From: Scyliorhinus canicula
Taxonomy: Eukaryota
NCBI RefSeq assembly: GCF_902713615.1
Contig: NC_052147.1
Coordinates: forward strand, 16,941,865-17,005,864
Direction of reading: 5' to 3'
Length of the DNA: 64,000 nucleotides
Position 1 is the stretch's first letter. The number at the start of each line of letters is the position of its first letter. Of the stretch, positions 9,085 to 59,344 are shown one piece after another. Below the pieces are notes generated by a model. The model made no database searches. It had not been told where the DNA came from and saw only the letters and a program-made list of their open reading frames with translations. A program made the position numbers and the translations under genes.

Positions 9085-12000
9085 ATGGAGACCGTGTACC
9101 GGCTATTGGCGGCTCTCCTGGCTCTGGGGGCTCTGTGCGAGGCTGAGCCCGTGAAGTTTCGGGACTGTGGTGAGTGATGCGATCAAAAGTATATATGTAT
9201 TTTTTTAAATTGTCTCATAATATCATTCATATATTCGAACTAACCCTCCTCAAGTCTGCTGGAAACAGTTTGAACTTCATTTGACAGTCGGGACGCCCGG
9301 GAGCGAAAGTACCATGCTGAGTCAAGGCTGCATTAGTTATCATTTTTATCACCGATTTAACCCTAGGCGGACTGCAGAGTAACTGGAGTACGTGCCTACA
9401 TATTCCTGAAGGTAACGGGACTGGTGGTCAAAAGGCAGCTGGAGGCATTTTCCTTTTTTTTGGTTGAGAGTTTCAAGAGCAAAGTGGTTATGCTTAGACC
9501 CTATTGTAGGAACGATGCGTTTGCACTAGAAGAAACTTAGGAAGTTGTTGCCAGGAATTATCATTTTAGCTCTGAGAAAAGATTTAGACAGTCTGGATTT
9601 ATTTTCTTTGGAACAGAGGCAGCTGAGGGGAGTTTTAATTGATAATAGCAAATTACTGCAGATGCTGGTATCTGGAACAAAAACAAAATGCTAGACAATC
9701 TCAGCAGGTCTGACAGCATCTCCAGAGAGAGATTGGAGCTAACTTTGGTGACTGTCAAAACTCTGATGAACTGGAAATAGGGTCACATTTGTACTGTTCT
9801 GAGGAGGGCCAACAATAGGTGAATATTGAAATGAAAACTGAAAAGCGCTTATTGTAACAAGTATGCTTCAATGAAGTTACTGTGAAAAGCCCCGAGTTGC
9901 CATATTCCATCGCCTGTTCGGGGAGGCTGGTATGGGAAGGATTGACAAGGATTTCATGGTCAGAAAGACCAAAAAATGCAAATAGCTGTGATTAAGGCTA
10001 ACAAGGGTGCTGGTAATGGCACATAAAGAGATTAGAATGTGTTCATGACAATAAAGGTAAGCAGTGTGTCAGAGGGCAGCTAGGAGCGGGTGGGACAGAC
10101 AGTGGTGAGAGAAAAATAGATTGATGAAAGAAATGAAAATAAATTAATAGAAATAAAAATGGGGTGAAAGTAGAGGAGCAAGTTCATAGTCTGACGTTAT
10201 AGAACTTCAAGTCCGGAACAGTAAGAAGTCTTACAACACCAGGTTAAAGTCCAACAGGTTTGCTTTGAATCACTAGCTTTCGGAGCACAGCTCCTTCATC
10301 AGGTGATTCCGGAGGATGTAAAGGACCTAATCGGAAGATGAAGCGCTGTTCCTCCAGTTTACACTGTGTCTTTACTGGAACATTGCAGCAGGCCAAGGAC
10401 GGACATGAGAGCAGAGCAGTGAGCTGAAATGGCAAACGACAGGAAGGTCTGCATTTAGTCGATCCAATGTAGAGTAGGCTGCATCAGGAGCAGTAAATAT
10501 AGAAACCATACATAGAGATTGGAAGCAGGAGGAGGCCATTTGGCCCTTCAATGCAATAGACCAGATAGAAGGTGATGCCCTTGAAGCACTGTGTCTCTTG
10601 CAAACTCCACATAGACAGGCACCCAAGGCCGGAATTGAGCCTGGATCCCTGACACTGTGAGACAACACTGCTGCCTCTGCGGTTTAAAAGGGAGGTTTTT
10701 TTTTTGCCATGTAGGATTGCCTGAAAGGGTGGTAAAGGCAGAAGCCCTCGTAGGATTTTTTTATTTTTTGCATGTTATCACCTGCAAAGTTACAGGATAA
10801 GGTGGAATTTGTTCCTGAAATTAAAGTCAGCTTTTGAAAGAGTGCATGTATTTGAAGGTAGAATGTTAACAGATTTTTTTTTTTTGAATGGTGGCTTCCT
10901 GTGCTCAGTGTTAATACAAATAAAAAGTCAACATTGCTCATAGAAATACTTGAGCTCAAAAGTTCTGACTGCCAATCGGGCTTTTTTTATTAAGTACTGT
11001 TGAAGAAATTGCAAACTCTCCTTGTTTCAAACAACTTTGAATACAGCTGTGCTTGTAGTGCTTCTGTTACTACTGTTATATTTTGAACTTTAGTTCCTGC
11101 ATTACAGCCTTCTAACTGTTGCACACTTGGATCCTGGTTACTTTCTTTACACACTGCATGTTGACTTTATGCATAAAAATTTCAAACCCCCAAAAAAAGT
11201 TCCCCCGCCTGGCCTTTCCATAGGACCTGTGGAATCTGTCATTTTGTTTTGAGGCTTATGTTATTGACTCCTGGTACTAGAGAGCTTACAATAATAGATG
11301 CACACGTGTGCAAATGCTGAACTGTCCTGATTCTGAACAGTTTGTGGTTAAAGTCACTGCATTATCAATCTTTAGCTGTACATTTTCCCTTTGAATTAGC
11401 AGAAATCTGATCAAAATATGTGCAATTACTTTCTTCCCATCCTTGCTTATTTCCCTTTTTATAAAGTTAATAAAAAATTTACATCCAGACAAAAAGAATT
11501 GCCAGTTATCAGGTGGCCCTTGAATGCTGGGGCTTTCAAAATTTGTATTTTTTCAATGTATTTTATTCCTAACATATTAATAAAAACACCAGAACGCAGA
11601 TAATCTGAGGAACACTCCCCAACTCAGGTTTCCCCCCCCAAACCTCTGCTGAACCTCAATTCAAACTTCCCCTAGCCAGGCTGCCATCCATGGCGGCGTA
11701 GGCGACAACCATTTCAGCAAAATTCTTCGCCAGGCAATGACGTCGGCCTTCCTCCCCTCCATCAGCTCTGTAAGCAGTCTTACATCATCAGGTTAAAGTC
11801 CAACAGGTTTGTTTCAAACACAAGCTTTCGGAGTGCAGCTCCTTCCTCAGGTGAAGAAGGAAGGAGCTGCGCTCCGAAAGCTCGTGTTTGAAACAAACCT
11901 GTTGGACTTTAACCTGGTGTTGTAAGGCTTCTTACTGTGCTCACCCCAGTCCAACACTGGCATCTCCACATCATGGCTTCCATCAGCTCTGGCATTTACG

Positions 12001-18825: not shown

Positions 18826-20129
18826 ACTAGGTCACTAATTGCCAACTCCTGTAACAGCATCTATCCATTCTGTAGCCAGTTAGCAGTTTCTCGATTCTGC
18901 ATCTTCAAGAAAAAATTGTCAAACTTGAACAAGGACAGAAGTATTAAATTACAATTTTTGCACTTGTACGTTTTTGAACATGGATTTCTAGACTGTTATC
19001 TGTCCTAGCCTTAACATGATGGGATTAATAAAGCTGTGAATTACACTGTAAACTGTTTTGAAATCCAGAGTTCTTTGGGCATCAATAAGAATTTAAACCA
19101 TGGTGATTGTTTTTAAATTGAGGGTGTACTACTAGTTATGGAACTGACTACTAGAGGAATTACCTGGTTTGGATGCTTGGCAGCCTTTCTTATTTGGGCT
19201 TTCCTTATTTCTCTCTCCCCCCCCCCCCCCCCCCCCCCCCATCTCTCTCCCTCCCTCTTCCCAAACCCCACCCACTCCAAAATAATATTAGAAACATAGA
19301 AAATAGTACTCAGCCCTTCGAGGAATATTTTGCTTGAATTGTTCCTTCTTGGACTTTCATCTTTTTTTTTTTTGCTTGGGTTTTGGCCTTTTGTTTACCA
19401 GGTTCCTCCCTCGTCTCTTCCCCTCATGATTTGGCGACAACAATGTATTGGCAATCTTTTTTCCTGTTTGTCCTGTCTCCTTTGATGCAATGGGTACAGA
19501 TTTGTTTATCTCGCGAGCCAGATGACCAATGAAGGTATGTCGGGTAAACCACTGGCAACATGTCGAGTGCTGTAAGTGGAAGCATCACTGACCCAATCCA
19601 TACTACTGAGTGGGGCAGAAAGGGGTAGCATTGTCAGCGTTTGATCAGAACTCTCACCTTTGCACAATCAAGTGATTGGAGAGAGCGGGGACAGGGTCAA
19701 TGGGTTCTTGCCTCCATGTGGACCATCTTCATCCCTTGACCCCTGTCTCCATTTCGGTGATAGACCAACCATCATTATTACAAACCCCAGACTCTCTCAG
19801 CTCCCTCAATTACAGTTCCTCACCCTGCTTCCTATATGGACTCCATTGCATTCTGTCAGTTTCTCTGCCTCATGTGCATCTGTTCTGATTGCCACAGTTG
19901 AAAATGGTGCTTCTGACATGTCTGCCTTTTTCCTTAACTAAGGTTCTTCCACACTGCTCCCGGTGGTTGATAGGGCTCAACCAGTTTTGATCCATTTCCT
20001 GCACCTCAACCCTTCCTCCCAGAACCATGAAAGGGTCTCCTGCTTGTTCTCATTTTCCACCCCACCAGCCTCTGCATTCAAAGGATTATCCTTTACCATT
20101 TCTGCACATTCCAGTGTGATACTACCATA

Positions 20130-22086: not shown

Positions 22087-25000
22087 ATGGTAGTTGTGTG
22101 TTGGGTAATGGCGGCCCTCCTGGCCCTGGGCGCCCTGTGTCAGGCTGAACCCGTCAAGTTTGTGGACTGCGGTGAGTGATTTGAGGCGGGGGAGCCTTCA
22201 CATTGACCTTTTTATATATCTTACTAACATTAAATTTCTTTCCCCACGTTCGCCTGCTCTAGTCTAGCAATTCTCTGAGCTTTGTACAACTTTCTGTCAA
22301 AATCAGGTTGTATTTCTCTGCGTCAACCTTTGCAAGACAATATGATGGCCCTGAGGGGTTTAAGTGCCATTCCACTGGACTGAAATACTCATTGGCTTTT
22401 CTTCGAGCGGACTGAGATATGCTAATTGTATTGGGAGTGTGGTGTGATGGTCTGACTCATGTTCATGTGAGCTCTTATCGCTGCAAGTGGCCGTTTGTTA
22501 TTTTTTTGTGCTCTGAGAATTGAGTGTCTTCCGGCAGAGTAATGTTTTTCCAACAATGTGTGGGTTTCATAGAATCTCTACAGTGCAGAAGGAGGCCATT
22601 CAGCCCATCGAGGCATACAGCCCTCCAAAAGAGCACCCTACCTAGAGTGCACTCCCCTGCCCTATCTCTGTAACCTTGCGTATCAGTCATGGCCAAACTA
22701 TCTCACTTGAGCACCTTTTTGGACTGTTTGAGGCAGCCAGGGGGAAACCCACTCGGACACAGTGAGAACATGCGAACTCCACGCAGTCGCCCGAGGCTGC
22801 AATCGAACCTGGCTGCTGTGAGGCAGCAGTGCTAACCAACCACTGTTGTGAAATGTTTGGTGCCAAAGCTTCGCGGCTGACCGGTGTGAATAAACAGCTG
22901 AAAATGTAAAAATGCCTGGGAATTATTGGGTTGCATTGAAAATCAAAGCTTGTCAGTTTGCTCGAAAGTTTTTTTTTAAAAAGCCTGCACTCATGAGAAT
23001 TTGCAGTAGTGGAAAAGGAAAATTTCAGTCCACCTGTCTGCCTTTCCCTGTCATGCTCCGTTTCTTCTTGTCACCCCTCCACTTGACTTTTAACAGTGGA
23101 CATTCTTGTTCCCTCTTCCTCACATATACATAGCTTCCGTTTTTAATACATCTATACCATTTGTCCTGGCCACTCCCTGTGATAGCAAGTTCCATATTCT
23201 CACCACATTTTGGGTGAAGGAGTTTGTTCTTGTTCTCACTTGCCAAACAAGTAGTGATGATGCTGAAAAGCAATACAATTAAATGGAGCCCCTTTTGGAT
23301 GGCTATCATTTCTTTAAAAAAGTGCCTTCTGTTGGTGTTTGTTGGGGGCTGGTTTAGCACAGGGCTACTAAATAGCTGACTTTTAAAGCAGACCAAGGCA
23401 GGCCAGCAGCACGGTTCAATTCCTGTACCAGCCTCACCGAACAGGCGCAGAATGTGGCAACTATGGGCTTTTCACAGTAACTTCATTTGAAGCCTACTTG
23501 TGACAATAAGCGATTTTCATTTAATTTCAAGTTTGTTTCCTGTGTTGCACAGAGCAAGGTTACAACAGTCTTTGTTTGCTATTATGTATTGCGCAAAGTC
23601 TCCAAGGGCTACAAAGGCTTGCTGAAACACGTGTATGCAAGTAAAATCAAAATCTTGTTATATTCTTATTTTTGTTTCTTTTTCTTGTCTCTCTTTCTTC
23701 CTACTTTTCTTTACAGAAAGCTTCCAGTCCATGACAACTATGGAGTGAAGTGTATTGTACTGTATGCAATTATATTTTGGGCAGTAGAGTCCAGATTGTA
23801 ATTTTTGTTTTGGAAGTCCTCCACCTTGAGCTGAATTTGAGCTCAAGTACAAATTTTGCCTTTCTGTGCTGCCTCCAGAATCTCCTGAGTGAGACAGTAG
23901 GAAATAGATTAAGGGAGATTCCTTGAAGATCTTCAGACAAACTCCAGGAAACTGCAGCTATTATCATTAATTACCGCTAGCCCTCCACCGACCTTCTATC
24001 ACCCAAGGTGACCTTAATTCTCAGAAGCTCAGTCAATTTTCTTAAAGTAGAATGAATCCATACGTGGCCCACCGTTTGAAAGTACTGTTCACACTATTTC
24101 AAACCATCTAGCACTCAACGTTATTGCTGCAAAGTCTGCTGTCTCAGATTGTAGAATCACCTCCTAAAATGATCTTTATCATCTTAACTATTTTCCCCTC
24201 CACCATTTTGCACACTCCCTTTTCACCACTCTACATTTCTGCTTCCTCGTGACTAGAGAGCTTCAGAAATGTATTTCCTGTTCTTCCTGCAGATCCGTAT
24301 TCTCCATAGAAATCTAAGGCTAATTTCACGCAAGGCTATGGTAACATTGTTTTAGTCACATGCATTGCATGTTTTACACCATGCAAGTAAAAAAAAAACT
24401 TGTTAGCAGTCACTTCGCTCATGATGTTTATCCAGTCCATATCTCCTACTGTCAGATTATTAAAACCACATTAAGGATCTATTGGTGGTGGCAGCAGCAG
24501 CCTTCCATTCCGTAAATTGATGGTTTGCACTACGTGTGGCTCATGAACCCCACTAAGGATTAAACCACTAATTATTTTTGCATTCCGGCAAGTATAATGA
24601 CCTAACACAGCTTTAAAACATTTTATGTCAAGTACTGTTTCCTGTCACAGTCTAGTGGTTCCTGAATATCTGTGTAAAAAGTGCAGCTTTTAGCAGGTTA
24701 CTTTGGTCAAGCTTTTGTGCAACTGGATACAGTAAACAGCACATTGCATCTCTGCTAAACTTAGTTACTTACAATTTACCGTGCCGAAGGAGGCTGTTCG
24801 CCCATCGAGTCTTACCAGCCCTTGGAAAGAGGGCCCATGTCTCCAACCTAACCCCGTAACCCAGGGGTGGGCAAACTTTTCCATGCAAGGGCCACATTCA
24901 GAAATTCACAATTTTAAAGGGCTGCATAGTATATTAAGTAAAATAATTACTTCACCCGGTTATGATTCTGGGTGCCTCATATAGAACACAGAACATAGAA

Positions 25001-41555: not shown

Positions 41556-44500
41556 TCACTTTGATTCTGCCTCTGTGAACAGGGTCACAAAGGGGTTGCC
41601 GTGTCGGGAGTCAGACATTGCGTCGTCCTGCTCTCCCGGATCCCACACCCTTGTGTGGATCAGGCATGCTATTTTGGAGTTGTGTGACCGGGGGTCACTC
41701 TCGTCATTGCGGACAAGTCTGTAGGAATTGTCCCTGTGCCATTGTGTGGCGTCGAGTGTGTTGTCGGGGTAGTCGGGGTCGGGTGGTGGTTCGGGGTTTT
41801 TGAGGTAAGTGACTTCCATGGGGTCACTGGAGTCGGGGTCGTAGTTGGTGCAGTGTGGGCTGTATGGCTGTGTGGTGTCGCTGTCTTCAGAGTCAGTGTC
41901 TGTCCTACTGTCTCTGCTGTGGCAGCTTGTGGGCGTGTCGGGGCGTGGTCTGTAGTGGTCTGTGGGCGGAGTCATGGGCGAGTCCGTGGATGAACTGGTC
42001 TGTGAGGGGGATGGTGGAAAAGTGTCTCTGGTGGGCGGGGTGAAGTGTTCTGCCGCGTCTAGCAGGACATGGTGAGCATGGTTGGCCTGTGTTCCATAAG
42101 CCTTTAACTGGTTTATATGGAACCACGCGGTCTTCCCATTAGGATATTTGATCCTGTAAACGGAGGGGCTAATTTTGTCCGAAATTGAGTAGGGACCGGA
42201 ATATTTTGGAGCCAAAAAACTGCTGGGGTTATAAACAGATAACATTACCTGTTGCCCAACCTGGAATTCTGTGGTGTGTACGGTCTTATTGAAACAGGCA
42301 GTCCGTTGCTGTCGGCGTTTCCCTAGCTGGACTGCGGCTGCGAGCTGTGCAGACCTCACAGTCTCAACTAGATCTCTAACTGCCTTTTCATGTGTGAGGG
42401 CCGTCACTTCGGGGCTTGTCATGTCCAGTCCTAAAAGGAATTCTGTACCTTTCATAGGGCGTCCGGTCATGAGTGTGTGTGGTGTGTATCCTGTCGATGT
42501 GGAGACAGTGTTCCTTATGAACATAAGTGCAAAGGGGAGCACTGAATCCCATGTGGAATTGTTCTCTTGAACCATTTTCCTAAGGGTAGTTTTTAGGGTC
42601 CGATTCATGCGCTCCACAATCCCGCTGGACTGTGGATGATACGCAATGTGGAAGTTCTGTTTGATTCCGAATATTGTCAGGACGTTCCTCATGACCCGTC
42701 CTGTAAAGTGAGATCCCTGGTCCGAATCGATACTTCGGGGTAAACCCCATCTCGTGAAGATGTGGTGGGTCAGGATCTTTGCAGCTGTCTTAGCTGTGTT
42801 TGTTCGCGAGGGAAATGCCTCTACCCACTTGGTAAAGGTATCTATCACCACCAGAACGTATTTATAGCCATTCCGACAAGGGGGCAATGGACCTATAAAG
42901 TCGATCTGGAGGTTTGTCCAAGGGCCGTTAACTGGGCGAGTATGCCGAAGTTGTGCTTTCTTAGAATACCGCTCCGGGTTATTCTGAGCACAAATCAGGC
43001 AATTCTCTATGTAGTGCGTAACATCATTCCTGAGATCAGGCCACCAACAGAGTTGCCTGAGGTGCCTCGTTGTTGCATCAATTCCCTGATGGCCGTGTCC
43101 GTCATGGAACAAGGCAATCATCTGATTCCTGTCCTGCTGTGGGACCACATAAAGTCGGTCCTTAATGATCACACCCTCATGTGTGGTCAGTGCGTGTTTG
43201 AAGTGCTCGTAAGCAGGCACAAAGTTTCCCTTGAAAACCTCCCTGAGGTCTCCGTCCTGTTTTTGTGCTGCCACGAGGTCTTTAATATCAGTCTGTGAGA
43301 CTTGGACTGCGCTCACAGGGGCGCTAGCTGGTGCGGTAGCTGGGGGGGTCCATAAGTGTCCTCTCCTGGAACCTGCCTTAGCCAACGCGTCGGCTTTTAC
43401 ATTCCCAGGGGGTGATGACCTATGGTGACTTCTTACTTTTATTATGCCGAAGGTCCTGTCCTTCGCTTTCGCTAAAATATGCTGGAGTAGAGGGGCTGAT
43501 GGAAGGGGTTTCCCGTCTGCGGAGACAAAACCTCGTGTCCTCCACAGGGGCAGAAAATCGGTTAAACTGTTACAGACATATAAGCTGTCTGAATATATGT
43601 CTGCTGGGCTGGGGAAAGAATCGGGGTGGTCCACTATGTACGCTATGGCTGCTAGCTCTGCTGCCTGCGCGCCTAAGTGACCTGGTAACTTAAGAGCTAT
43701 CTCTTCGAGAGCGCGCCCCTGCGCGTCCTCTACATAGATGCCGCATCCTGTGATACGCTCACCATTTAAAACTGTGGAGGAACCGTCTACATAAATCCTC
43801 AAGGGTCCACACGTGTCTGTGGGCTGGGGGCTTTGTTTCGGGTTCCCTATCTTCCTGGGGGGTGTTTTGGCTAAAAAGGGTCCTGTGTTATGCAGGGGAG
43901 CTACAATTTCACAGTCATGGGGCTGTCCGGGGTATTGGAGGTTGTCTGCTAAGTATGTGTGGGTGCGTGTCCGTTTTACTGTAATGTCCCGTCCTTGTAA
44001 AAGTAGGGTCCACCTAGCTGCCCTAATCTGGCTAACTGAACCGTCCTTCAGTCGACCGTCTAGGAGTAGCTGTGTGGGTGTATGTTCGGTTAGAATGGTG
44101 ATGGGGTTTAGTCCGGTTATGTATGAAAAGTACTGTACTGCCCAGAAGACAGCAAGGAGGTGCCTCTCACAGGCTGAAAATCCTTGTTCTACCGGGTCTA
44201 ACAGTCGGGAGGCATAAGCCACTGGTCTTAGCTGCTCGTGCCGTTCCTGAAGCAACACGGCCGAGAGGGTTAGATCTGTGCTAGCTACCTCGATTGCGTA
44301 CGGTGAAAGTTGGTCGGGGACTAGCAGCGCGGGTGCTGCACTAAGGGCTCGTTTCAACTCTTCCACAGCGCCTGTATGCTGCGGAAGCCATTCCCAGGGG
44401 GCTCCTTTCTTAAGGAGGTCTGAAAGTGGGGCGGCTTTTGTCGCGAATCCGTCGATGTGGTTCCGACAATAGCCAACCAGTCCTAAAAACGACCGGAGGG

Positions 44501-45782
44501 CTGATACATTCTGGGGAAGGGGCAATTTGACAATCGAATCAATTCTTTTGAATTCGATCTCGCGTTTGCCGTGCGTGATGACTGATCCCAAATACATCAC
44601 TTTACTTTCCAATATTTGGGCCTTTTTCGGGTTAACTTTACAGCCAATTTCAGTTAAGAGTTCCAGGAGTTCGGCCAGAAGCGAAATGTGCTCTGCCTTT
44701 GTGTCTGTCTGCAGTAGTAGGTCGTCTACATACTGTACCAGACATTCGGGTCGGGAAAATTTTTCTAATCCACTTGCCAGCTGTCGGTGGAAAATGGAGG
44801 GGGAATTGTGGAATCCTTGTGGGAGGCATGTCCACGTGTACTGCTGTGTTTTAAAAGTGAATGCGAATTTGTATTGGCACGCTTTTGCCAATGGTATTGA
44901 CCAGAATCCATTACTGATGTCCAATACCGTGAAGTACTTGGCGTTGAGACCCTGCTTGAGCATGGTCTCGGGACTAGTAGCTACCGTTGGGGCTACTGCG
45001 GGGGTTACTTTGTTGAGTTCCCGATAATCGATGGTCAGACGCCATGATCCATCGGGCTTCCTCACTGGCCAAATAGGGGCATTGTTGGTGGAGGCTACCG
45101 TTCTCAGTACACCTTGGTCCAACAAGCTGCCTATAACTTTTTCTATTTCCACCTCTGCCTCGAGGGGAAATCTATACTGCTTTTGCGGTCGGGGGTCCTG
45201 TCCGGTAACATGAACTTGTCCAGTCATTCTGCCACAGTCATGACGGTGACTTGCAAATGCTGTCCTGTGTTTGTTTAGTAGGGCCTTAATTTGTCGGTCG
45301 GTGTGGAGTGTAGTCAGGTCGAATGAGTACTCTCCCACTGCGCTAATCCGATTAGCGTAGTCTCCTACTGTGAGGGTGGCTGGGGCTCTGTCTGATCTCG
45401 CCATTCGCCAGACACACTGGTTCACTGGGTCGAACGACAAGCTGTGAGCGTTCATGAAATCTATCCCCAGGATGTGCTCTGCTGTCCGGGGAAGATTTAC
45501 TAAAACTACGGGGTGCCTTGTGCTAATGTTCCCTAGCTGGATCGCTACGGGTGCTGTGATATGTCCCTGCTGCGAGTGTCCGGTGAACCCGCTAAGTGTG
45601 ATGGTGGAGGTGGTCGGCCACGTGTCTGCGTGTGCCGTGGTTGTGGAGTTAATGGTGGTGCGGGATCCTCCTGTGTCCCACAGTAACTCTATGGGCTTCC
45701 CTTTGACTTTTGCCGTGACTACGGGCCTCCCTGATGAGTCCCATAGTGTGTCACAGACCCAAGTGGGGGAGCCCGAACACCG
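41556..45782 (-). CDS. pol: Pro-Pol (protease, RT, tether RNase H, RNase H, integrase), in frame with gag
   Basis: LLWDTGGS at ~45669-45677; LDISNGFWS, LPQGFHNSP, YVDD; RPVAYASR tether; YVDGS..AQAAEL..YSDS..GNVKADALA; HHCC and DDE integrase with GPY module. Frame open from 45782, 109 codons upstream of the listed ATG. Confidence 0.93.
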   Translation of the reverse strand, partial: RCSGSPTWVCDTLWDSSGRPVVTAKVKGKPIELLWDTGGSRTTINSTTTAHADTWPTTSTITLSGFTGHSQQGHITAPVAIQLGNISTRHPVVLVNLPRTAEHILGIDFMNAHSLSFDPVNQCVWRMARSDRAPATLTVGDYANRISAVGEYSFDLTTLHTDRQIKALLNKHRTAFASHRHDCGRMTGQVHVTGQDPRPQKQYRFPLEAEVEIEKVIGSLLDQGVLRTVASTNNAPIWPVRKPDGSWRLTIDYRELNKVTPAVAPTVATSPETMLKQGLNAKYFTVLDISNGFWSIPLAKACQYKFAFTFKTQQYTWTCLPQGFHNSPSIFHRQLASGLEKFSRPECLVQYVDDLLLQTDTKAEHISLLAELLELLTEIGCKVNPKKAQILESKVMYLGSVITHGKREIEFKRIDSIVKLPLPQNVSALRSFLGLVGYCRNHIDGFATKAAPLSDLLKKGAPWEWLPQHTGAVEELKRALSAAPALLVPDQLSPYAIEVASTDLTLSAVLLQERHEQLRPVAYASRLLDPVEQGFSACERHLLAVFWAVQYFSYITGLNPITILTEHTPTQLLLDGRLKDGSVSQIRAARWTLLLQGRDITVKRTRTHTYLADNLQYPGQPHDCEIVAPLHNTGPFLAKTPPRKIGNPKQSPQPTDTCGPLRIYVDGSSTVLNGERITGCGIYVEDAQGRALEEIALKLPGHLGAQAAELAAIAYIVDHPDSFPSPADIYSDSLYVCNSLTDFLPLWRTRGFVSADGKPLPSAPLLQHILAKAKDRTFGIIKVRSHHRSSPPGNVKADALAKAGSRRGHLWTPPATAPASAPVSAVQVSQTDIKDLVAAQKQDGDLREVFKGNFVPAYEHFKHALTTHEGVIIKDRLYVVPQQDRNQMIALFHDGHGHQGIDATTRHLRQLCWWPDLRNDVTHYIENCLICAQNNPERYSKKAQLRHTRPVNGPWTNLQIDFIGPLPPCRNGYKYVLVVIDTFTKWVEAFPSRTNTAKTAAKILTHHIFTRWGLPRSIDSDQGSHFTGRVMRNVLTIFGIKQNFHIAYHPQSSGIVERMNRTLKTTLRKMVQENNSTWDSVLPFALMFIRNTVSTSTGYTPHTLMTGRPMKGTEFLLGLDMTSPEVTALTHEKAVRDLVETVRSAQLAAAVQLGKRRQQRTACFNKTVHTTEFQVGQQVMLSVYNPSSFLAPKYSGPYSISDKISPSVYRIKYPNGKTAWFHINQLKAYGTQANHAHHVLLDAAEHFTPPTRDTFPPSPSQTSSSTDSPMTPPTDHYRPRPDTPTSCHSRDSRTDTDSEDSDTTQPYSPHCTNYDPDSSDPMEVTYLKNPEPPPDPDYPDNTLDATQWHRDNSYRLVRNDESDPRSHNSKIACLIHTRVWDPGEQDDAMSDSRHGNPFVTLFTEAESK

Positions 45783-47531
45783 TCAGTTCGTCTCGTCCAC
45801 ATTGGTGGGTCCTGACTGTACTGCTACATTGTGGATTGGTTTTGCTTTGTTGCGGTTCAGAGTGCCTGTCTGCTGGCCTCTCTGAGATCGCTGGGGTGCA
45901 TTACACTCTTTTGCCCAATGCCCTAACTGTCCACAGTTATAGCATTCCTGTCCTTTCTGTTGAGGGCTGCTCTTGCCTTCATTTACCCATGCGGGCTTCT
46001 GGTGCTCTCTGACTGCTTGGATATCTGCAGCAGCCTGAGCCTCTTCTGGGGATCTAACCTTTCCTTTTGCCTGAAGCGATTGCTCCCAAGCGCGGGACAA
46101 TCTTTTCAGGACCCATTTTTCGTTATGGGCCTCTTCTGAGGGGTCGTAACTATTGCAAGCGCTCTGTCCTGCTTCTGTTGCGTGTGAGATAATTGTGCGC
46201 GTCCATTTAACCATGTTTTCGCGGGTTAAATGCGCTCTATCTAGCTGTCCGAAAACTGCGCTGAAATGAATCCACAGCCTTCCTGCGAATGCTGTGGGGT
46301 GTTCAGATCTCTTCTGCCTGCACTTATTCAAGCCTTCTACGGGGTCACCTCTATTGTACCCGATGGCATCTAAAATAGCAGTGTGCATCTCCTCTAGGCT
46401 GCCTCCTGCCACGTTTTGTGGGTCGGGGAGGGCTGCCACTACACTCTGGTCTAAGCTCAACACGGTGAGCTTAACCTGCTCTCTCTCATCCAGGCCGTAC
46501 ATGGTAGCCTGCTGTTTTACTTTCGCGAAGAACTGGTGGGGGTCTGCGGTGGGGAGGAACGGAGTGATCTTTTCACAAGCGTCCCTTAGCTGGGTTACTG
46601 TTAAAGGGGTGGTGTAAGTTATGTCTGGGGCGCCTTCTGATTCGGCTTTCCTCTGTGTGGTTACGGGATTCATGGGTGCGGTTATGATCTGAGCTGTGGG
46701 GGGTTGGGGTGCCTGTCGTTTCTGCTGAGCTGCGGGCGCACATGTTCCCTGAACATAACGCTGCGCTGTCTCGCTTAATTCCTGCCAATCTGGGGCGTTT
46801 TCCCCATCTAACTGAGCTCCAAAGGTGCTTTGGAAGCCATTCTGCACCGAAAGCAGAGATTGCAGTTCCGCAATCTGTTTTCTGCATTTCGCGTGGTCAA
46901 CTGTGCTTTGTCTTTGTTCGGTTGTTGCAGCATGGAGTGCTCTCAAAGCTGCTTTGAGATCGGAACATTGCCTCTGCAATGCCTCCACCTGCTTCTCCGA
47001 TTCCTGTCTTATCAGAACGGCACGTTGCACGTCCTGATAGGCTTTCTCATACTGGGTCTGGGAACTGTTCAGATGAGCTAGACAAGACTGGTGAGCCCTC
47101 TTGGCATCATCCACCTCTCTACCCTTCTCTGCCAACTTCCCTTTAAGATCCAGGTTTTCTTTCTCGATGTCCCTGACATCGACCTTACTCATTCGGTTCT
47201 TTTCCTCTAAATCTGTCCGGAGCGTCCTGATGACCTCCTCTGCGCCTCGCAACTGTGCCAAGCAGGACACAATCGCCATCGGCTTGCGTGCTTTACCTAA
47301 ACTCTTTTTGTGTATCTGAGAGAGGTTCTCCCACCAAGTATGACCTATACTTCCGGGACCTGTCTCCTCATTTGCACAAAACTCTTTCCAAAGGGGCCAT
47401 CCCTTTCCCTGCAGATATTTGCGGAGTTCCAGCTCCCACGTGGGACACTGGCCTACCCTGCTACTGCTGCTGGTCGCTGCGACCACAAACTTTGCTGGAT
47501 CCATCAGACGTTCCATTGCCTGCATGGCCAT
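45783..47531 (-). CDS. gag: Gag (582 aa) with long coiled-coil segment and one CCHC zinc knuckle
   Basis: First ORF after PBS; CYNCGQLGHWAKEC; heptad-rich region ~aa 90-230. Confidence 0.9.
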   Translation of the reverse strand: MAMQAMERLMDPAKFVVAATSSSSRVGQCPTWELELRKYLQGKGWPLWKEFCANEETGPGSIGHTWWENLSQIHKKSLGKARKPMAIVSCLAQLRGAEEVIRTLRTDLEEKNRMSKVDVRDIEKENLDLKGKLAEKGREVDDAKRAHQSCLAHLNSSQTQYEKAYQDVQRAVLIRQESEKQVEALQRQCSDLKAALRALHAATTEQRQSTVDHAKCRKQIAELQSLLSVQNGFQSTFGAQLDGENAPDWQELSETAQRYVQGTCAPAAQQKRQAPQPPTAQIITAPMNPVTTQRKAESEGAPDITYTTPLTVTQLRDACEKITPFLPTADPHQFFAKVKQQATMYGLDEREQVKLTVLSLDQSVVAALPDPQNVAGGSLEEMHTAILDAIGYNRGDPVEGLNKCRQKRSEHPTAFAGRLWIHFSAVFGQLDRAHLTRENMVKWTRTIISHATEAGQSACNSYDPSEEAHNEKWVLKRLSRAWEQSLQAKGKVRSPEEAQAAADIQAVREHQKPAWVNEGKSSPQQKGQECYNCGQLGHWAKECNAPQRSQRGQQTGTLNRNKAKPIHNVAVQSGPTNVDETN

Positions 47532-53899: not shown

Positions 53900-54600
53900 A
53901 AAATTTATTGCGATGGAAGAAGGTCTGTGGTGTTACACACAGGTCTGTGGTGTGAGGGGCTACGAAGGGTGATCGCCTCAATCTTGTGCGCGAGGCTGGG
54001 GCTAATACAGCTGAAGGTTGTGTACAGGGTGCACCTCACAAAATCAAAGATGAGCCGGCTGTTTGAGGGGGAGGAGGATGTCTGTGAGTAATGTGGGAGG
54101 GGTCCCGCAAACCATGTTCATATGTTTTGGTCCTGCCTGAAGCTTGAAAGGTATTGGCGGGAGGTATTTAGCACAATCTCGGGGTTTTACAGACGGATAC
54201 GAAGCCCGGTCCCCTGGAAGCTATTTTCAGGTGACGGACCGGCCCAGGCAGCAGGCGGGTGCGGGGGCAGATGTTTAGCCTTTCCTCACTGATCACTCAA
54301 TGGTGGGTCCTGTCGGAGTGGAGATCGGCTTCTCCACCTTGCGCCTGAGTGAGACGGGGGGGATCTGCTGGAGGTTTTGACCCTGAAGAGGGTGAGGTTT
54401 GAGTTGAGGGGGGCAAGGAGGAGTTCTCCAATTGTTGGGGTTGTGGGAGTTGATTGCTGTTGAGGGGAAGAGGGGGGGGGGGGGAACTGCTTTCTTTTCT
54501 GTTCTACCTTTTACATTCTCCGTTATATGTTGTTCGGGCTGTTCTGTTTCTCTTTCTTTTTTGTTAAAATGATTAAAATATGGCGAATAAAAATATTTAA
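53900..54600 (+). mobile_element. L1/Tx1-like 3' end fragment
   Basis: CARLGLIQLKVVYRVHLT, HMFWSC motif, AATAAA and A-rich end. Confidence 0.75.
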
Positions 54601-54685
54601 AATAATTTTTTTTTCAGATTAGATGCAGCCTGATGCCGACCAATAGGATTTTGCACAGGCGTGTTGGTTTGAGGGAAACCTTAGT

Positions 54686-57600
54686 CTAAGGATGTGCAGC
54701 AATGACGGTGTTGATCCAGTGGAGATAGCTAGACACCCGGGTGTACACCCCGTACCGTCCAGGCCGCCCACACCCAGTGCCCCAGGACACGATGCCCATT
54801 AGGTACCAGGCTCCTGAATGCTGGTCAGATACTAGGAACCCGCCACCCGTATCCCCAGCGCAGGCATCCTTCCCCCCTTCAGGAAGTCCAGCACAAAACA
54901 TGTTGAAGGTAACCAGAGGACGGTAGCCCCCGATTCGGGCCCCCTGGAAAGCCTGCAAGCAGCGGTTCTGATGGATTAAAGGCAACGGTACATAACGCAG
55001 CCGGTCACGGAGGAAGTAGCCATCCTCGATGCCCCAGCCAGCCACATAACCTACTCTCCCAGGCTGGTAGAGGTCATTTCCCTTATGCCTCCGAGCCTGG
55101 GGTAAGCAGGCAGGCATTGCCCCCTCCTCCTCCCGGGTTGCCCTCAACTTAATCAGGGCAATGTCGTTATCAAAATTGTGCAGTTCCTCCCCAAACCCTG
55201 GGTGCACCACAATATCCTCAATCTCCTGAGTGGCCCCTGCCATGTGTGCTGCCAAGCTGGTGCCCAAGTTCATCCGGATCTGGGTGGTGTTGCGTTGGCG
55301 GACCAGGTTTATTCGGCGGCTGCCCTTGGGGTAGAAGATGTGAGCAGCTGTCAGAACCCAGCCCCCGCCGATCAGGGTGCCACCAGCCCGCCCCCGTCCC
55401 CTTGCCACCACCAATACGTGCCAAGGGAAGCTCCCCTCTTCTGCCAGCTTGCCGCCCAATATCCTCTGCACAGTTGTCACGGGGTTTGAAGGCCTTCCAC
55501 AAACTGCAACAGTGGGAAGAAGGAAAACAGGAGTCAGCGTATGTAGTGTGAAGTGGGCAAGATAGAGAGAGAGAGAAACAGAGGCCAGATTTTCCTCGGG
55601 GTTCCTCGATTTGAAAGATTGGCTCTGAGCCCAGGTCGATAAAAGCAGAGGGGGGAGGGGGGAAGTAGTGGGATGGAGAGAAAGAGACACAGAGAGAGGA
55701 AGAAAGAGTGAGATAGTGAGAAAGAAAAAGATACAAAGAGAGGCAACGAGAAAGAGGGGTGAAATCTGCACTGCCCACTCCATCAGAGTTACCGATGCGG
55801 CAGAGAATTGCACGTTGGGCAATAAAACAGGACCGGCGCAATGCATCGGCGGCAGCAGTGAGCAACACACCTTGTGCCAACGGCAGGAGGCAGGCTCATT
55901 TGCATCCCATTAACGGCTGGAAGCCCAATTCTCTACACCTGCATGATGCTCCCGTCCTCTTGGCCAGGTTTCACGCGGGTATGGATTGCTGCAAGTATTT
56001 TTAAGCATGGCCCTGATGCAGTGGACCTCGCAGTGGGTCAAGGGGGTAAGTATGTAACATTGGTGCCTCCAAAGTCCATCGGAATGCCCCCCACAGCGCA
56101 AATCCTGCCCACTTTGTCCCTAGCCTCCCCATCAGGCAGTTATTATATCGAATGTGTCTGTGATAAAGGGGGCCTGTGATATGGAGGGGTCTCTGAAATG
56201 GGTGTGTCTCTGATATGGGGGGGTCACTGATATGGGGGGGTCATTGATATAGGGGTCATTGACATGGGGGAGGGTTCACTGATATGGGGGTCATTGACAT
56301 GGGGGAGGGTTCACTGATATGGGGGTCATTGACATGGGGGAGGGTTCACTGATATGGGGGGGTCTCTGTTGGGGATCTGGTGGGGGATCGTTTAGCCTCA
56401 CCCATGCGTGCTGTGGTGCAGGTGGTGACCCAGCAGTTTCCATGGTGGGGGTGGGGTGTGGGCCGGGGGGGGGGGGGGGGGTAAAGGATGCTCCTACTTT
56501 AGTTGTCAGTTGGTGGGGGGGGGGGGGGGGGGGGGGAAGCTGCCACCGGATCTCGGAATCAAGCTGTTGAAAATGGCAGCCTGATAGCGTGATTCGGAAC
56601 GGAATCCCAGGAGCTCCCGGCCATGCATAAATATGCATGGAAAAGAAGAGGGAATGGCTCCTGGGCACTACTCCGAGCACCAGGAGCGATTCTACTCCGG
56701 CAGGAGATTATAATCTCCCAAACAGAAAACCCCGGCCAGAGAGCAGAAGAAAGAGACAGGCAGAGAGAGAGAGAGAGACAGATGAGCAGACAGAGAAAAG
56801 TGAAAGGTAGAGGCAGAGAGAAACAAAAATACCAGGGAAGAGAGAGAGGCCGAGAGAGTGAGAGAGAGAGAGACAGACACAGAGAAAAATGAAAGGCAGA
56901 GACAAAGGGAGACAGTGAGAGAGAGAGAGAGAAATAGGGAGACACCAGAGACAGTCAATAAGAGACAAAGAGATTAGGAGGGAGATAGAGATTACCTTGA
57001 AATCGAGAGCTTCCATTCCTTGTGCCTTCGCCCACACTCTTGCTTATTCCTGTGGCGTTCTGCTCCATGACCCAGGGTTTGATGGTAGTTTGGGGGTCAC
57101 TGGCTGGTGGGATGTCTAAGCTTCCTCTGGGTTGCTGTGACACGGTGCAGTCACAGAGCAACACAAGTACCAGAGCCTGGAGCCTGGGAGGGAGAGTAGA
57201 GAACGGCGGCTGAGAGTTCTGATGAAAATCAGGAGTGGAGACAGGCGGGGCAAGCTTTTGGACTTCTGGCCCCCAGCCTCGCCTCAGGGTCACAACCCCA
57301 GATGCTGCCCTTGGTGAAATGTCACTCAAATTCTTGGGCCTCATGAGCGAGATAATGACCTCCTCATTGCCCAGAACATCTTTGTTGCCTGAAAAGCAAC
57401 AGGCATCCTACCCTCAGCACCACAGCAGTGCCAAAGGAGAAAATGCAAAACTGCCACAAAATGGAAGGTCTCTCACGTTGTGGGCCAGGGTTTAGAGAAC
57501 CCCAAAGTGTATCATGGAGTTCACCTGACCCACAACTTTTAATAGATTGTGGTATGGGGAGCACACAACCCACTCCACAGGTGCTGTGCAGCAGAAATGG

Positions 57601-59126
57601 AAAAGTATTTTTTAAAGCAAAACAATGTTTATTCTATGAACTCAAGTTAACCTTTTAAAAAATACAGTGAACATCTTAGCAACCATCAATTCAAATACAT
57701 CCCCCAAAGACTACAACACTAAATAATCCTTTAAGCTTTCCTTTTAACATCCATACGACTTAAAAACAAAACCTTTAACAGAAGCAGGTTTAAGTCACTA
57801 CTGGGAACATTTATAATTCTGAATTCACCAAATTATCAAAAGATAGTGGGCGCTATTCTCCGCCCCCCACGCCTGGTGGGAGAATAGCGGGAGGTCCTCC
57901 TGACATTTTTCACGCCCTCCCGCTATTCTCCCCCCCCCCCACGCCTTCACGCCCGTTTCAACATGGCAGCAAACACACCTGCTCGCTGCCATTGTGAAAC
58001 GGGTGCCAGATGCCCGTTTGGGGCATCTGGGGGCCCGATTGGCACGGCAGTACCACGGCCATGCCAAGGGGGCATAGGCCCGCGATCGGTGCCCACGATC
58101 CATAACGGACACACTCTTTTCCCTCCACCGCCCCGCAAGATCAAGCCGCCACGTCTTGCAGGGCGGCTGAGGGAAAAGACGCCAACTGCGCATGCGCGGG
58201 TTGGCGTTGTCCAACCTGTGCATGCGCAGCTGACGTCATCGGCCGCGTCAGCCACGTGATGCTTGGCGTGCGGCCTTGACGACCGTCATCAAGGCCGCGC
58301 CGGCGTGACGTCCGGGGCCCCGCTCCTAGTCCCACCCGGGGGGGAGAATCGGCCCCGGAAGTGGGCGTGAAGGCTGCCGTGGGTCACGGCCTGTCCCACG
58401 GCAGCCTTTACGATTCTCCGCATTTGCGGAGAATCTCACCCAGTCTTTTGATGGCAGAGAGAACAGCAGTACACCTGCTCTGTCTGGCTTCAGCTCCAAT
58501 ACTGAAAACAAAACTAAAACACACCCTGCAGCAAACAGCCTAAAATGAAAGTAAAAAGCTGAGACAGCTCAGTTCCACCCACACTCTGACATCATTGATA
58601 AACACCCATTTCTTAAAGGTGCATTTCTGAAACACCCATTTCTTAAAGGTACTCTCACATGACACTTAAATTAACTGCCAGGTTCTTAAAATGGTGTTTG
58701 GTTTCTGAAGCTTGGCATTTAACCCCTCTTCCGTACAGATGGCGTCCGGCCTTGCCTATTGAAACCATCCTCTCCTCAGAGATCCAACACGATCACGCTT
58801 GAGTGGGGATTAGGCTTGACCTCTGGGCCTTGCTTAAGAAAGCAGCTATCAACAATCGAGTTCCAAAGAGGTATTTGTACCTAGGTTTCGTCTTTGGAAT
58901 AAATTGAGGCTAGAGTCAGGAGGAGATGTAGCCTGTTGGAGGCTCCACAGTCAAGCCGGAAGTGTCTGCAGGTCTAAGTTCATGGGAGGGCCCAGTAAGC
59001 CGTTAAACATCAGATTGTAGCTCAGGGCCACAGAAAACGCCCCAGGAGACTGGAGCCAACAACAAATTTGGATCCCACTCAATGCACCACCGTGTCTCTT
59101 AACTAAGAGCGTCCAACGTACCTCAT
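54686..59126 (-). CDS. C1r/MASP/haptoglobin-family serine protease homolog, 336 aa; exons 59126-59122, 57183-56996, 55503-54686
   Basis: ATGAG|GTACGT micro-exon, CAG|GCTC...CAAG|GTAATC, CAG|TTTGT; phases 2 and 1 join in frame: MRLQALVLVLLCDCTVS...FQVCGRPSNPVTTVQR-ILGG..TAAH..DIAL..GDTGG; single-exon protease domain without histidine-loop Cys. Confidence 0.8.
56180..56365. repeat. G-rich short tandem repeat; GA-rich simple repeats at ~55560-55760 and ~56735-56990
   Basis: Repeated GATATGGGGGTCATTGACATGGGGGAGGGTTCACT units. Confidence 0.8.
57476..58664 (-). mobile_element. Solo LTR interrupted by a GC-rich MITE-like insert (~57848-58440)
   Basis: Matches reverse complement of 1-224; ends ...CATGACA; flanks CTCA/CTTA (imperfect TSD). 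Confidence 0.7.
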
Positions 59127-59344
59127 CACCCTTCAGCGAGAACAGATCCTGATTTAAATCGCAGTGTTGGAGCACACACACAGCAATACAGCACAAGCAG
59201 GAATAGGAGACATTGACCTCTTGGACTGTTACGGTCTATATTCTGCTGCCCACGTCACATACTCAGGAATGTTCATGGCTCAATCGTGTTGCAGTGGCAG
59301 GAACAGATTTCAGTTCAGGGCCCCAGAATTACAGCCCGGAAGTT

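Follow-up and report, generated by a model that had tools for sequence, protein, structure and literature searches.

A gene for a bare protease domain, probably reduced from a C1r-type gene and with threonine in place of the nucleophilic serine, in the catshark Scyliorhinus canicula and other sharks

The DNA considered here, a window of 64,000 nucleotides on contig NC_052147.1 of Scyliorhinus canicula (positions 16,941,865 to 17,005,864 of the forward strand), carries on its minus strand a three-exon gene, coding between 59126 and 54686, for a predicted secreted protein with a trypsin-fold domain of the C1r type. The nucleophilic serine of that domain (residue 195 in chymotrypsin numbering) is replaced by threonine, within a GDTGG motif that is shared by the orthologues of other sharks. 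The gene is transcribed and spliced as predicted and is under purifying selection. The reading that we prefer, with moderate confidence, is that it is a domain-reduced tandem copy of a C1r-type complement protease gene whose product is a cleavage-activated, catalytically crippled binding protein. A preliminary description of the locus had called the protein undescribed, which is not so: the exact model is identical at 336 of 336 residues to RefSeq XP_038630194.1 (P0276), named "haptoglobin-like isoform X1" in this species, and orthologues are annotated in 13 other sharks. The gene is thus annotated, yet uncharacterised as far as our literature and database search found.

The spliced coding sequence comprises 1011 nt and specifies 336 amino acids. 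The features of the gene, in window coordinates, are as follows, residues 42, 57, 58, 102, 189 and 195 being numbered as in chymotrypsin.

59122 to 59151, minus strand: exon 1, with at least 25 nt of 5′ untranslated region and, as the first 5 coding nt, ATGAG (59126-59122); donor GTACGT.
57184 to 59121, minus strand: intron 1 (GT..AG), occupied by repeats that show heavy transcription from other parts of the genome.
56996 to 57183, minus strand: exon 2, with the remaining signal peptide (MRLQALVLVLLCDCTVS) and a cysteine-free linker of 47 amino acids with NAT and NGS sequons; AG acceptor, GTAAT donor.
55504 to 56995, minus strand: intron 2 (GTAAT..TTGCAG), with CT microsatellites and poly-C tracts.
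54686 to 55503, minus strand: exon 3, with the linker cysteine, the activation site and the entire trypsin-fold domain; stop codon TAG at 54688-54686.
54500 to 54685, minus strand: 3′ untranslated region, which goes on past 54500 (a contig of run X1 extends 361 nt beyond).
55460 to 55465, minus strand: predicted activation cleavage site Arg78/Ile79 (VQR/ILGG).
55385 to 55387, minus strand: codon of Ala42, to be read with Ile58 (55337-55339).
55340 to 55342, minus strand: codon of His57, the same residue throughout the shark clade described below.
55163 to 55165, minus strand: codon of Asp102, the same residue throughout the clade.
54866 to 54868, minus strand: codon of Asp189 in the S1 pocket, which implies Arg/Lys specificity; the same residue throughout the clade.
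54848 to 54850, minus strand: codon ACG of Thr195, replacing the nucleophile Ser (GDTGG), with no variant in any run.

The protein begins with the signal peptide and the 47-residue linker, which are followed by the activation segment VCGRPSNPVTTVQR/ILGG, the slash marking the predicted cleavage, and by the trypsin-fold domain; besides NAT and NGS there is a third sequon, NTT. The Pfam Trypsin profile (PF00089) is matched over positions 1-220 of its 220 (E=1.1e-47), and the catalytic-type residues His119, Asp178, Asp277 and Thr283 correspond to chymotrypsin His57, Asp102, Asp189 and residue 195. With Ala42 and Ile58, the Cys42-Cys58 disulfide of the histidine loop is absent. The mature chain has exactly six cysteines, a number that fits an interchain Cys66-Cys197 bond together with bonds 168-182 and 191-220, and the linker Cys66 (VCGRP) would thereby pair with Cys197 (MPACLP; Cys122 in chymotrypsin numbering). 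In an AlphaFold2 model the mean predicted local distance difference test (pLDDT) score is 82-97 in all but three 10-residue blocks of the protease domain, and a Foldseek search with the model gives probability 1.00 to both MASP2 and C1r. Residues 1-62 are disordered in the model, with low pLDDT, so that this region contains no hidden module. CUB, EGF and CCP exons were not found anywhere in the 64-kb window by tblastn with five C1r/C1s-like proteins, which were full-length or, in the case of a Mustelus C1s-like model, fused.

Evidence from RNA was taken from four public runs compared with positions 54500-59300. Support for the junction 55503/56996 comes from three runs, belonging to three studies, whose contigs contain it, and from 13 raw oligo-dT RNA reads; for the junction 57183/59122 (57182/59121, cut +1) there are one contig and one raw RNA read, and exons 1, 2 and 3 are joined directly in one contig of 330 nt. 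Exon 1 is supported by a contig with 30 nt upstream of the junction, beyond which raw reads extend further, and exon 2 by its two RNA-supported junctions and by a 100% tblastn match to residues 2-64 of P0276. All raw reads over the exons have the same orientation. Contigs of three runs carry the catalytic codons of exon 3 without change, the Thr codon ACG is the same in contigs of three independent studies, and other letters at 54848-54850 occur in no run. The sole coding difference, 55471 C>A on the plus strand, replaces Val76 by Leu at P3 of the activation site; one run shows it in every raw RNA read (15 of 15), and it is probably allelic. In run X3 a contig remains unspliced across the exon 2 acceptor to 57219 (56996-57219), which may be pre-mRNA or an alternative first exon, and translation from an in-frame ATG at 57344 would lengthen the protein at its N-terminus while omitting the usual start of the signal peptide.

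Much of what the preliminary description had proposed is borne out by these results. Its three-exon minus-strand model, including the exon 2 donor at 56996, and the two junctions that it predicted were recovered, as were the signal peptide, the linker, the QR/ILGG activation site and a protease domain that retains His, Asp and the S1 Asp, is encoded by a single exon (exon 3) and lacks the histidine-loop disulfide. Its statement that CUB, EGF and CCP modules are missing agrees with the negative tblastn of the window, with the transcript that joins exons 1-2-3 and with the disorder of residues 1-62. An assembly error behind the ACG codon, which it had named as a possible refutation, is excluded by the invariance of that codon in every run.

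The orthologues have received diverse automatic names (haptoglobin-like, haptoglobin-related protein-like, C1r-like, C1r-A-like and MASP2-like). Those of Mustelus, Cetorhinus, Carcharodon, Rhincodon, Stegostoma, two Chiloscyllium species and Heterodontus are 336-346 amino acids in length, while S. torazame is represented by a partial model, Pristiophorus by one of 308 amino acids and Heptranchias by a fused model. Threonine, for which the preliminary description had recommended a search in other species, is present as GDTGG in all orthologues examined (11 of 11 other chondrichthyan sequences); one of the GDTGG sequences, P0008 from UniParc, branches below all the other orthologues. A residue table of 10 members of this GDTGG clade shows His57, Asp102, Asp189, Gly193, Asp194, Ser214-Trp215-Gly216, Gly226, every Cys and Thr195 to be invariant in all 10, and Arg15/Ile16 in all nine that cover the activation site. 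Position 42 is Ala in 10 of 10 and position 58 is I, V, T or A, neither ever being Cys. Conservation is highest in the activation segment, in GDTGGG and in the 220-loop. The Thr195 codon is ACG in the catshark, ACC in Chiloscyllium and ACA in Rhincodon, of which ACC lies one step from AGC, one of the AGY codons that the C1r/C1s/MASP-2/MASP-3/haptoglobin lineage uses for its active-site serine, and equally one step from TCC. Pairwise dN/dS (the ratio of nonsynonymous to synonymous substitution rates) over the protease exon is 0.18-0.21. The three-exon structure and the 5-nt ATGAG coding start are shared with Chiloscyllium, Rhincodon and Heptranchias (four sharks in all), exon 1 ending as ATGAG/GTATGT or ATGAG/GTAAGT in those three, and the protease domain is a single exon also at the loci L001, L002 and L003, the last being that of Heptranchias. 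A word-based search with the N-terminal 80 residues, aimed at haptoglobins, returned six shark orthologues only, and look-alikes in the ESM Atlas were confined to generic arthropod trypsin clusters.

Among solved structures in the Protein Data Bank (PDB), the best match is C1r (172 bits), nearly equalled by MASP2 (171) and followed by MASP1 (157), haptoglobin (153) and MASP3 (149); the alignment to C1r extends from the CG.P linker to the C-terminus. In a first tree (IQ-TREE, LG+C20, 66 protease domains) the GDTGG clade (100/99) falls within the C1r group (95/86), apart from the MASP2, C1s-like and MASP3 clades, and is sister to chondrichthyan C1r-like genes with support of 53/62. Grouping it with MASP2 instead was rejected by the approximately unbiased (AU) test (p=0.016). 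A larger tree of 87 rows included mammalian haptoglobins, found by way of a sturgeon query, and no verified fish haptoglobin; here the clade is again sister to the full-length chondrichthyan C1r-like genes (93/72), and mammalian haptoglobin, whose stem has a length of 0.94, joins bichir and sturgeon C1r (90/69). The stem branch of the GDTGG clade is itself long (0.47-0.51). The structure matches and the trees agree with the earlier suggestion that C1r is the closest relative.

The same affinity is reflected in the position of the gene in two other sharks. At the Heptranchias locus a C1r-like protease exon (9846-10648), which both trees place in the chondrichthyan C1r-like clade, precedes ATGAG/GTAAGT at 16826, exon 2 (19457-19642) and the GDTGG exon (22910-23707), all on the same strand, so that the GDTGG gene lies 6.2 kb downstream. 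In Heterodontus a 704-amino acid CUB-EGF-CUB-Sushi-Trypsin gene ends 2.7 kb upstream of the orthologue, after which the next gene is one for a C-type lectin on the opposite strand. The preliminary description had placed the gene outside the usual C1r/C1s neighbourhood; in these two sharks it stands directly downstream of a C1r-type gene, and the apparent isolation in the catshark arises because the window ends 4.9 kb upstream of the gene.

From these observations the following history and mode of action may be proposed. A tandem copy of a C1r-type complement protease gene would have founded a conserved chondrichthyan family, with nothing left of the copy but the signal peptide, a short glycosylated linker and the one-exon protease domain. 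The product would be secreted as a zymogen-like pro-form and cut after Arg78 at Gln-Arg/Ile, the type of site that C1r-type proteases cleave in C1r, C1s and pro-haptoglobin. The glycopeptide of about 60 residues would be held on by the Cys66-Cys197 disulfide, giving a two-chain form, and the new N-terminus at Ile79 would pair with Asp194 and form an S1 pocket specific for Arg or Lys. In this fold Thr195 is a very weak nucleophile, and the activated protein would therefore most likely be a slow or non-cleaving binder of a putative Arg-containing partner, whether a substrate, a serpin or another plasma ligand. Without CUB or EGF modules it would have no means of joining C1q or MBL complexes, and it may serve as a soluble regulator or decoy and not as a working complement protease.

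Several lines of evidence are consistent with such a role. The S195T replacement greatly compromises both thrombin and trypsin (PMC8695361). Paralogues of the same lineage with Gly195, Ala195 or Val195 are common and retain His57 and Asp102, so that a conserved active-site shell does not by itself imply catalysis. Nurse-shark plasma, according to the supplement of a proteomic study (PMC9207270), contains at least seven proteins whose best Swiss-Prot match is haptoglobin and whose eggNOG class is C1R.

Other observations weigh against a crippled binder. Threonine, and not Gly or Ala, has been held across the shark crown group with synonymous codon turnover, and His57, Asp102 and the oxyanion Gly193 have been retained alongside it, a pattern no less expected of a functional nucleophile than of a dead one. 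The disulfide with which Thr195 clashes in trypsin and thrombin is absent from the shark protein. Cleavage at Arg78, and the kind of protease that would perform it, are read from the sequence motif, and the sister relation to the shark C1r-like genes is only moderately supported.

Much of this evidence would suit a genuine threonine protease, in which the Ogamma of Thr195, activated by His57 and Asp102, would attack substrates with Arg or Lys at P1, slowly and with tight specificity; we consider this unlikely, although it has substantive points in its favour. Here Thr195 would be tolerable in the C1r lineage because the hindering Cys42-Cys58 disulfide is missing, Ala42 being constant in the clade and position 58 being I, V, T or A. 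The residues of the triad geometry, Gly193, the Asp194/Ile16 pair and Asp189 are invariant, and the Thr codon varies only synonymously at a dN/dS of about 0.2. In the engineered enzymes a clash with the C42/C58 disulfide has been put forward to explain the S195T deficit, and removal of C42/C58 corrected part of that deficit in thrombin and made S195T trypsin marginally better on amide substrates (PMC8695361), so that the natural disulfide-free background of the shark protein equals the condition that partly rescues the mutants. In our sample Thr195 with intact His57 is confined to disulfide-free domains (15 of 16, as against 0 of 7 domains with C42-C58). TSP50/PRSS50 has furthermore been claimed as a natural threonine protease of this fold (PMC3344824). 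Nevertheless, S195T remains greatly compromised without the disulfide, and in the thrombin S195T structure the threonine methyl group clashes with the incoming substrate (PMC8695361). The contrast in our sample represents only about three independent events on each side, and the clearly dead Gly195 and Ala195 paralogues of the lineage have kept His57 and Asp102 too. It is accordingly with considerable doubt that one may envisage, from the sequences, a natural chymotrypsin-fold threonine protease that was enabled by prior loss of Cys42-Cys58 and maintained at least since the two living superorders of sharks diverged, possibly since early chondrichthyans, with the same switch made independently in salamander and characiform C1r-like genes.

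Threonine at position 195 was indeed encountered elsewhere in the C1r lineage. A GDTGG protein of the salamander Pleurodeles waltl (P0013, 293 amino acids, C1r-like, His57 kept) was considered as an orthologue and rejected, because its place in the tree is among the C1r-like genes of Pleurodeles, within tetrapod C1r, and its threonine is therefore convergent. Thr195 has also arisen independently, as GDTGS, in characiform C1r-like genes with CUB and serine protease domains (P0028 and P0029, from Astyanax and Salminus). The Thr195 sequences P0013, P0028, P0029 and P0256 are all disulfide-free domains.

A second alternative is that the gene is the shark orthologue of haptoglobin, that is, an inactive protease-fold plasma protein that would bind haemoglobin or have other immunomodulatory haptoglobin roles. 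This, too, seems improbable on the sequence comparisons, even if it accounts for a number of features. RefSeq names the protein haptoglobin-like in Scyliorhinus, Carcharodon and Cetorhinus and haptoglobin-related-protein-like in Stegostoma; VQR/ILGG is the cleavage motif of pro-haptoglobin; and the architecture recalls that of teleost haptoglobin, which Wicher and Fries in 2006 reportedly found to lack the CCP module. The PDB score to haptoglobin, 153 bits, exceeds the 137-138 bits of shark C1r-like domains, but C1r and MASP2 score above haptoglobin, and ratios of such scores proved uninformative as a proxy for haptoglobin affinity because a slowly evolving C1r-type domain of sturgeon reaches 176 bits against haptoglobin and so exceeds the shark protein. 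A constrained grouping of the GDTGG clade with mammalian haptoglobin, the only haptoglobins included, was not rejected (delta log-likelihood 6.1, AU p=0.33), whereas the best tree unites the clade with the shark C1r-like genes and places mammalian haptoglobin elsewhere; orthology to haptoglobin is thus unsupported by the best tree, although the AU test leaves room for it. Genes known to lie near it encode a C1r-like protein, a C-type lectin and an ML-domain protein, and His57 is retained, unlike in mammalian haptoglobin. Haemoglobin binding is reportedly not evident in some cartilaginous fishes (Redmond and colleagues, 2018).

The published shark haptoglobin may itself be another gene. The nurse-shark UniProt entry "Haptoglobin" (H9LEQ0) is listed in the proteomics supplement at 48 kDa, as against about 38 kDa for the orectolobiform orthologues (345-346 amino acids), and no nurse-shark sequence is found among the close matches of the catshark protein. 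The chance that the catshark gene is the published shark haptoglobin is put at roughly one in three. Finally, a decaying or functionless remnant of a duplicated C1r gene, or an artefact of annotation or assembly, which the lost domains and the altered catalytic residue might suggest, is refuted, to the point of being hardly credible, by spliced and polyadenylated RNA in four runs, frames intact in every species examined, a dN/dS of about 0.2 and a three-exon structure kept across at least four shark orders.

Other sequences of potential interest to the history of fish haptoglobin were noted. Residues ~277-783 of P0145 (Mustelus) and the second domains of P0148 (Narcine) and P0149 (Mobula) represent another pseudo-protease, common to sharks and rays, of the C1s-like clade, in tandem with a C1s-like gene and always with His57Ser, Gly195 and the Cys42-Cys58 pair. 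The Mustelus protein has a signal peptide and CUB, EGF, CCP and protease domains, and this type might be the published cartilaginous-fish haptoglobin; a relationship of its second domain (GDGGG/H57S) to mammalian haptoglobin was rejected on the protease domain (AU p=0.005). In Acipenser sinensis two adjacent models, P0162 and P0037, contain in two copies a half-CCP directly before a C1r-type protease domain with His57Asn; it is this domain that scores 176 bits to mammalian haptoglobin, the highest among the non-haptoglobins tested, and its clade is sister to mammalian haptoglobin (90/69). Four proteins from Logan transcripts (P0382, P0384, P0391 and P0395; 260-300 amino acids) are short, a signal peptide being followed by CGKPEV..QRILGG and a protease domain that lacks any GDxGG motif; within the C1s-like clade they stand next to gar and Diretmus sequences, and they are candidates for the CCP-less fish haptoglobin of the literature.

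Some further features of the surroundings were observed. An ML-domain gene lies 9.4 kb downstream in Chiloscyllium; other called genes were not found in the 10-kb flanks of the Mustelus, Cetorhinus and Rhincodon orthologues, and Pfam and tblastn checks of the catshark window revealed, besides the present gene, retroelement open reading frames only. Among these is an intact-looking Ty3/Gypsy-type element (41556-47531, minus strand), in which a 582-amino acid gag-like frame with a CCHC zinc knuckle precedes a 1299-amino acid frame with reverse transcriptase, RNase H, integrase zinc-binding and core, and SH3 domains. Intron 1 contains repeats at 57398-57880 and 58364-58685 with contig depth up to ~8000. 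A joint 57844/58442, which skips 597 bases (57845-58441), occurs in three runs, so that most genomic or transcribed copies of the repeat are without this insert of 597 bp, which is rich in GC and resembles a nested insertion whose ends are inverted (GGAGAATAGCG...). In Heptranchias, the upstream C1r-like exon at 9846-10648 aligns in two reading frames that switch near 9986, owing to a frameshift or an assembly error.

The gene bears on two general questions. In enzymology it has been asked why serine, and never threonine, serves as the nucleophile of the trypsin fold; the shark Thr195, under purifying selection, with an otherwise intact catalytic and activation apparatus and in a disulfide-free background, makes the comparison of Ser and Thr directly testable. 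For the evolution of complement, the gene would represent a third independent reduction of a C1r-type gene toward a bare protease domain, alongside haptoglobin and C1RL, and one that still adjoins its likely parent gene, so that it may bear on how haptoglobin itself began. Should it turn out that the protein binds but has no activity, it adds no more than a further ordinary case to the pseudo-proteases of this family.

Among known systems, C1r is the nearest: it is the top match among solved structures, it shares the branch of the tree and, in two sharks, the adjacent position of a C1r-like gene, and it has the same single-exon protease domain without the Cys42-Cys58 loop and the same Gln-Arg/Ile activation site. 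In contrast to C1r, the shark protein lacks the CUB1-EGF-CUB2-CCP1-CCP2 modules and so cannot join C1q or C1s, has Thr195 for Ser and stands on a long stem branch. Haptoglobin is likewise a secreted, domain-reduced offshoot of the MASP/C1r/C1s lineage with an altered nucleophile, and has the same CG.P..P..VQR/ILGG..GSFPW motif; it differs in that mammalian haptoglobin has Lys and Ala (TTAKNLF, GDAGS) where the shark protein has His57 and Thr195, and in that the CCP (sushi) module of the mammalian alpha chain is missing from the shark protein, whose linker is cysteine-free and has no fold. The missing module weighs little, because teleost haptoglobin is reportedly without it as well.

C1RL (C1r-LP) offers a parallel in mode of origin, as a truncated tandem derivative of C1r located beside C1r, some reptile members of which have a changed nucleophile (GDAGS in Carettochelys). 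C1RL, however, retains a CUB domain and usually Ser195, neither of which the shark protein has, and the C1RL-type sequences of tetrapods form a clade of their own inside tetrapod C1r, which makes the shark gene a separate, parallel truncation. Threonine at the nucleophile position of the chymotrypsin fold is otherwise known from the S195T mutants of trypsin and thrombin, with or without C42A/C58A, and from TSP50/PRSS50, whose combination of Thr195 with intact His57 and Asp102 is displayed by the shark protein; the former are laboratory constructs, the latter is a mammalian testis protein, and none belongs to the complement family. With C1r, C1s, MASP-2, MASP-3 and haptoglobin the shark protein shares the one-exon protease domain, the absence of Cys42 and Cys58 and the linker cysteine, whereas the coagulation-factor outgroups have both Cys42 and Cys58. 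The gene thus belongs to a known class, the domain-reduced, nucleophile-altered derivatives of C1r and the MASPs.

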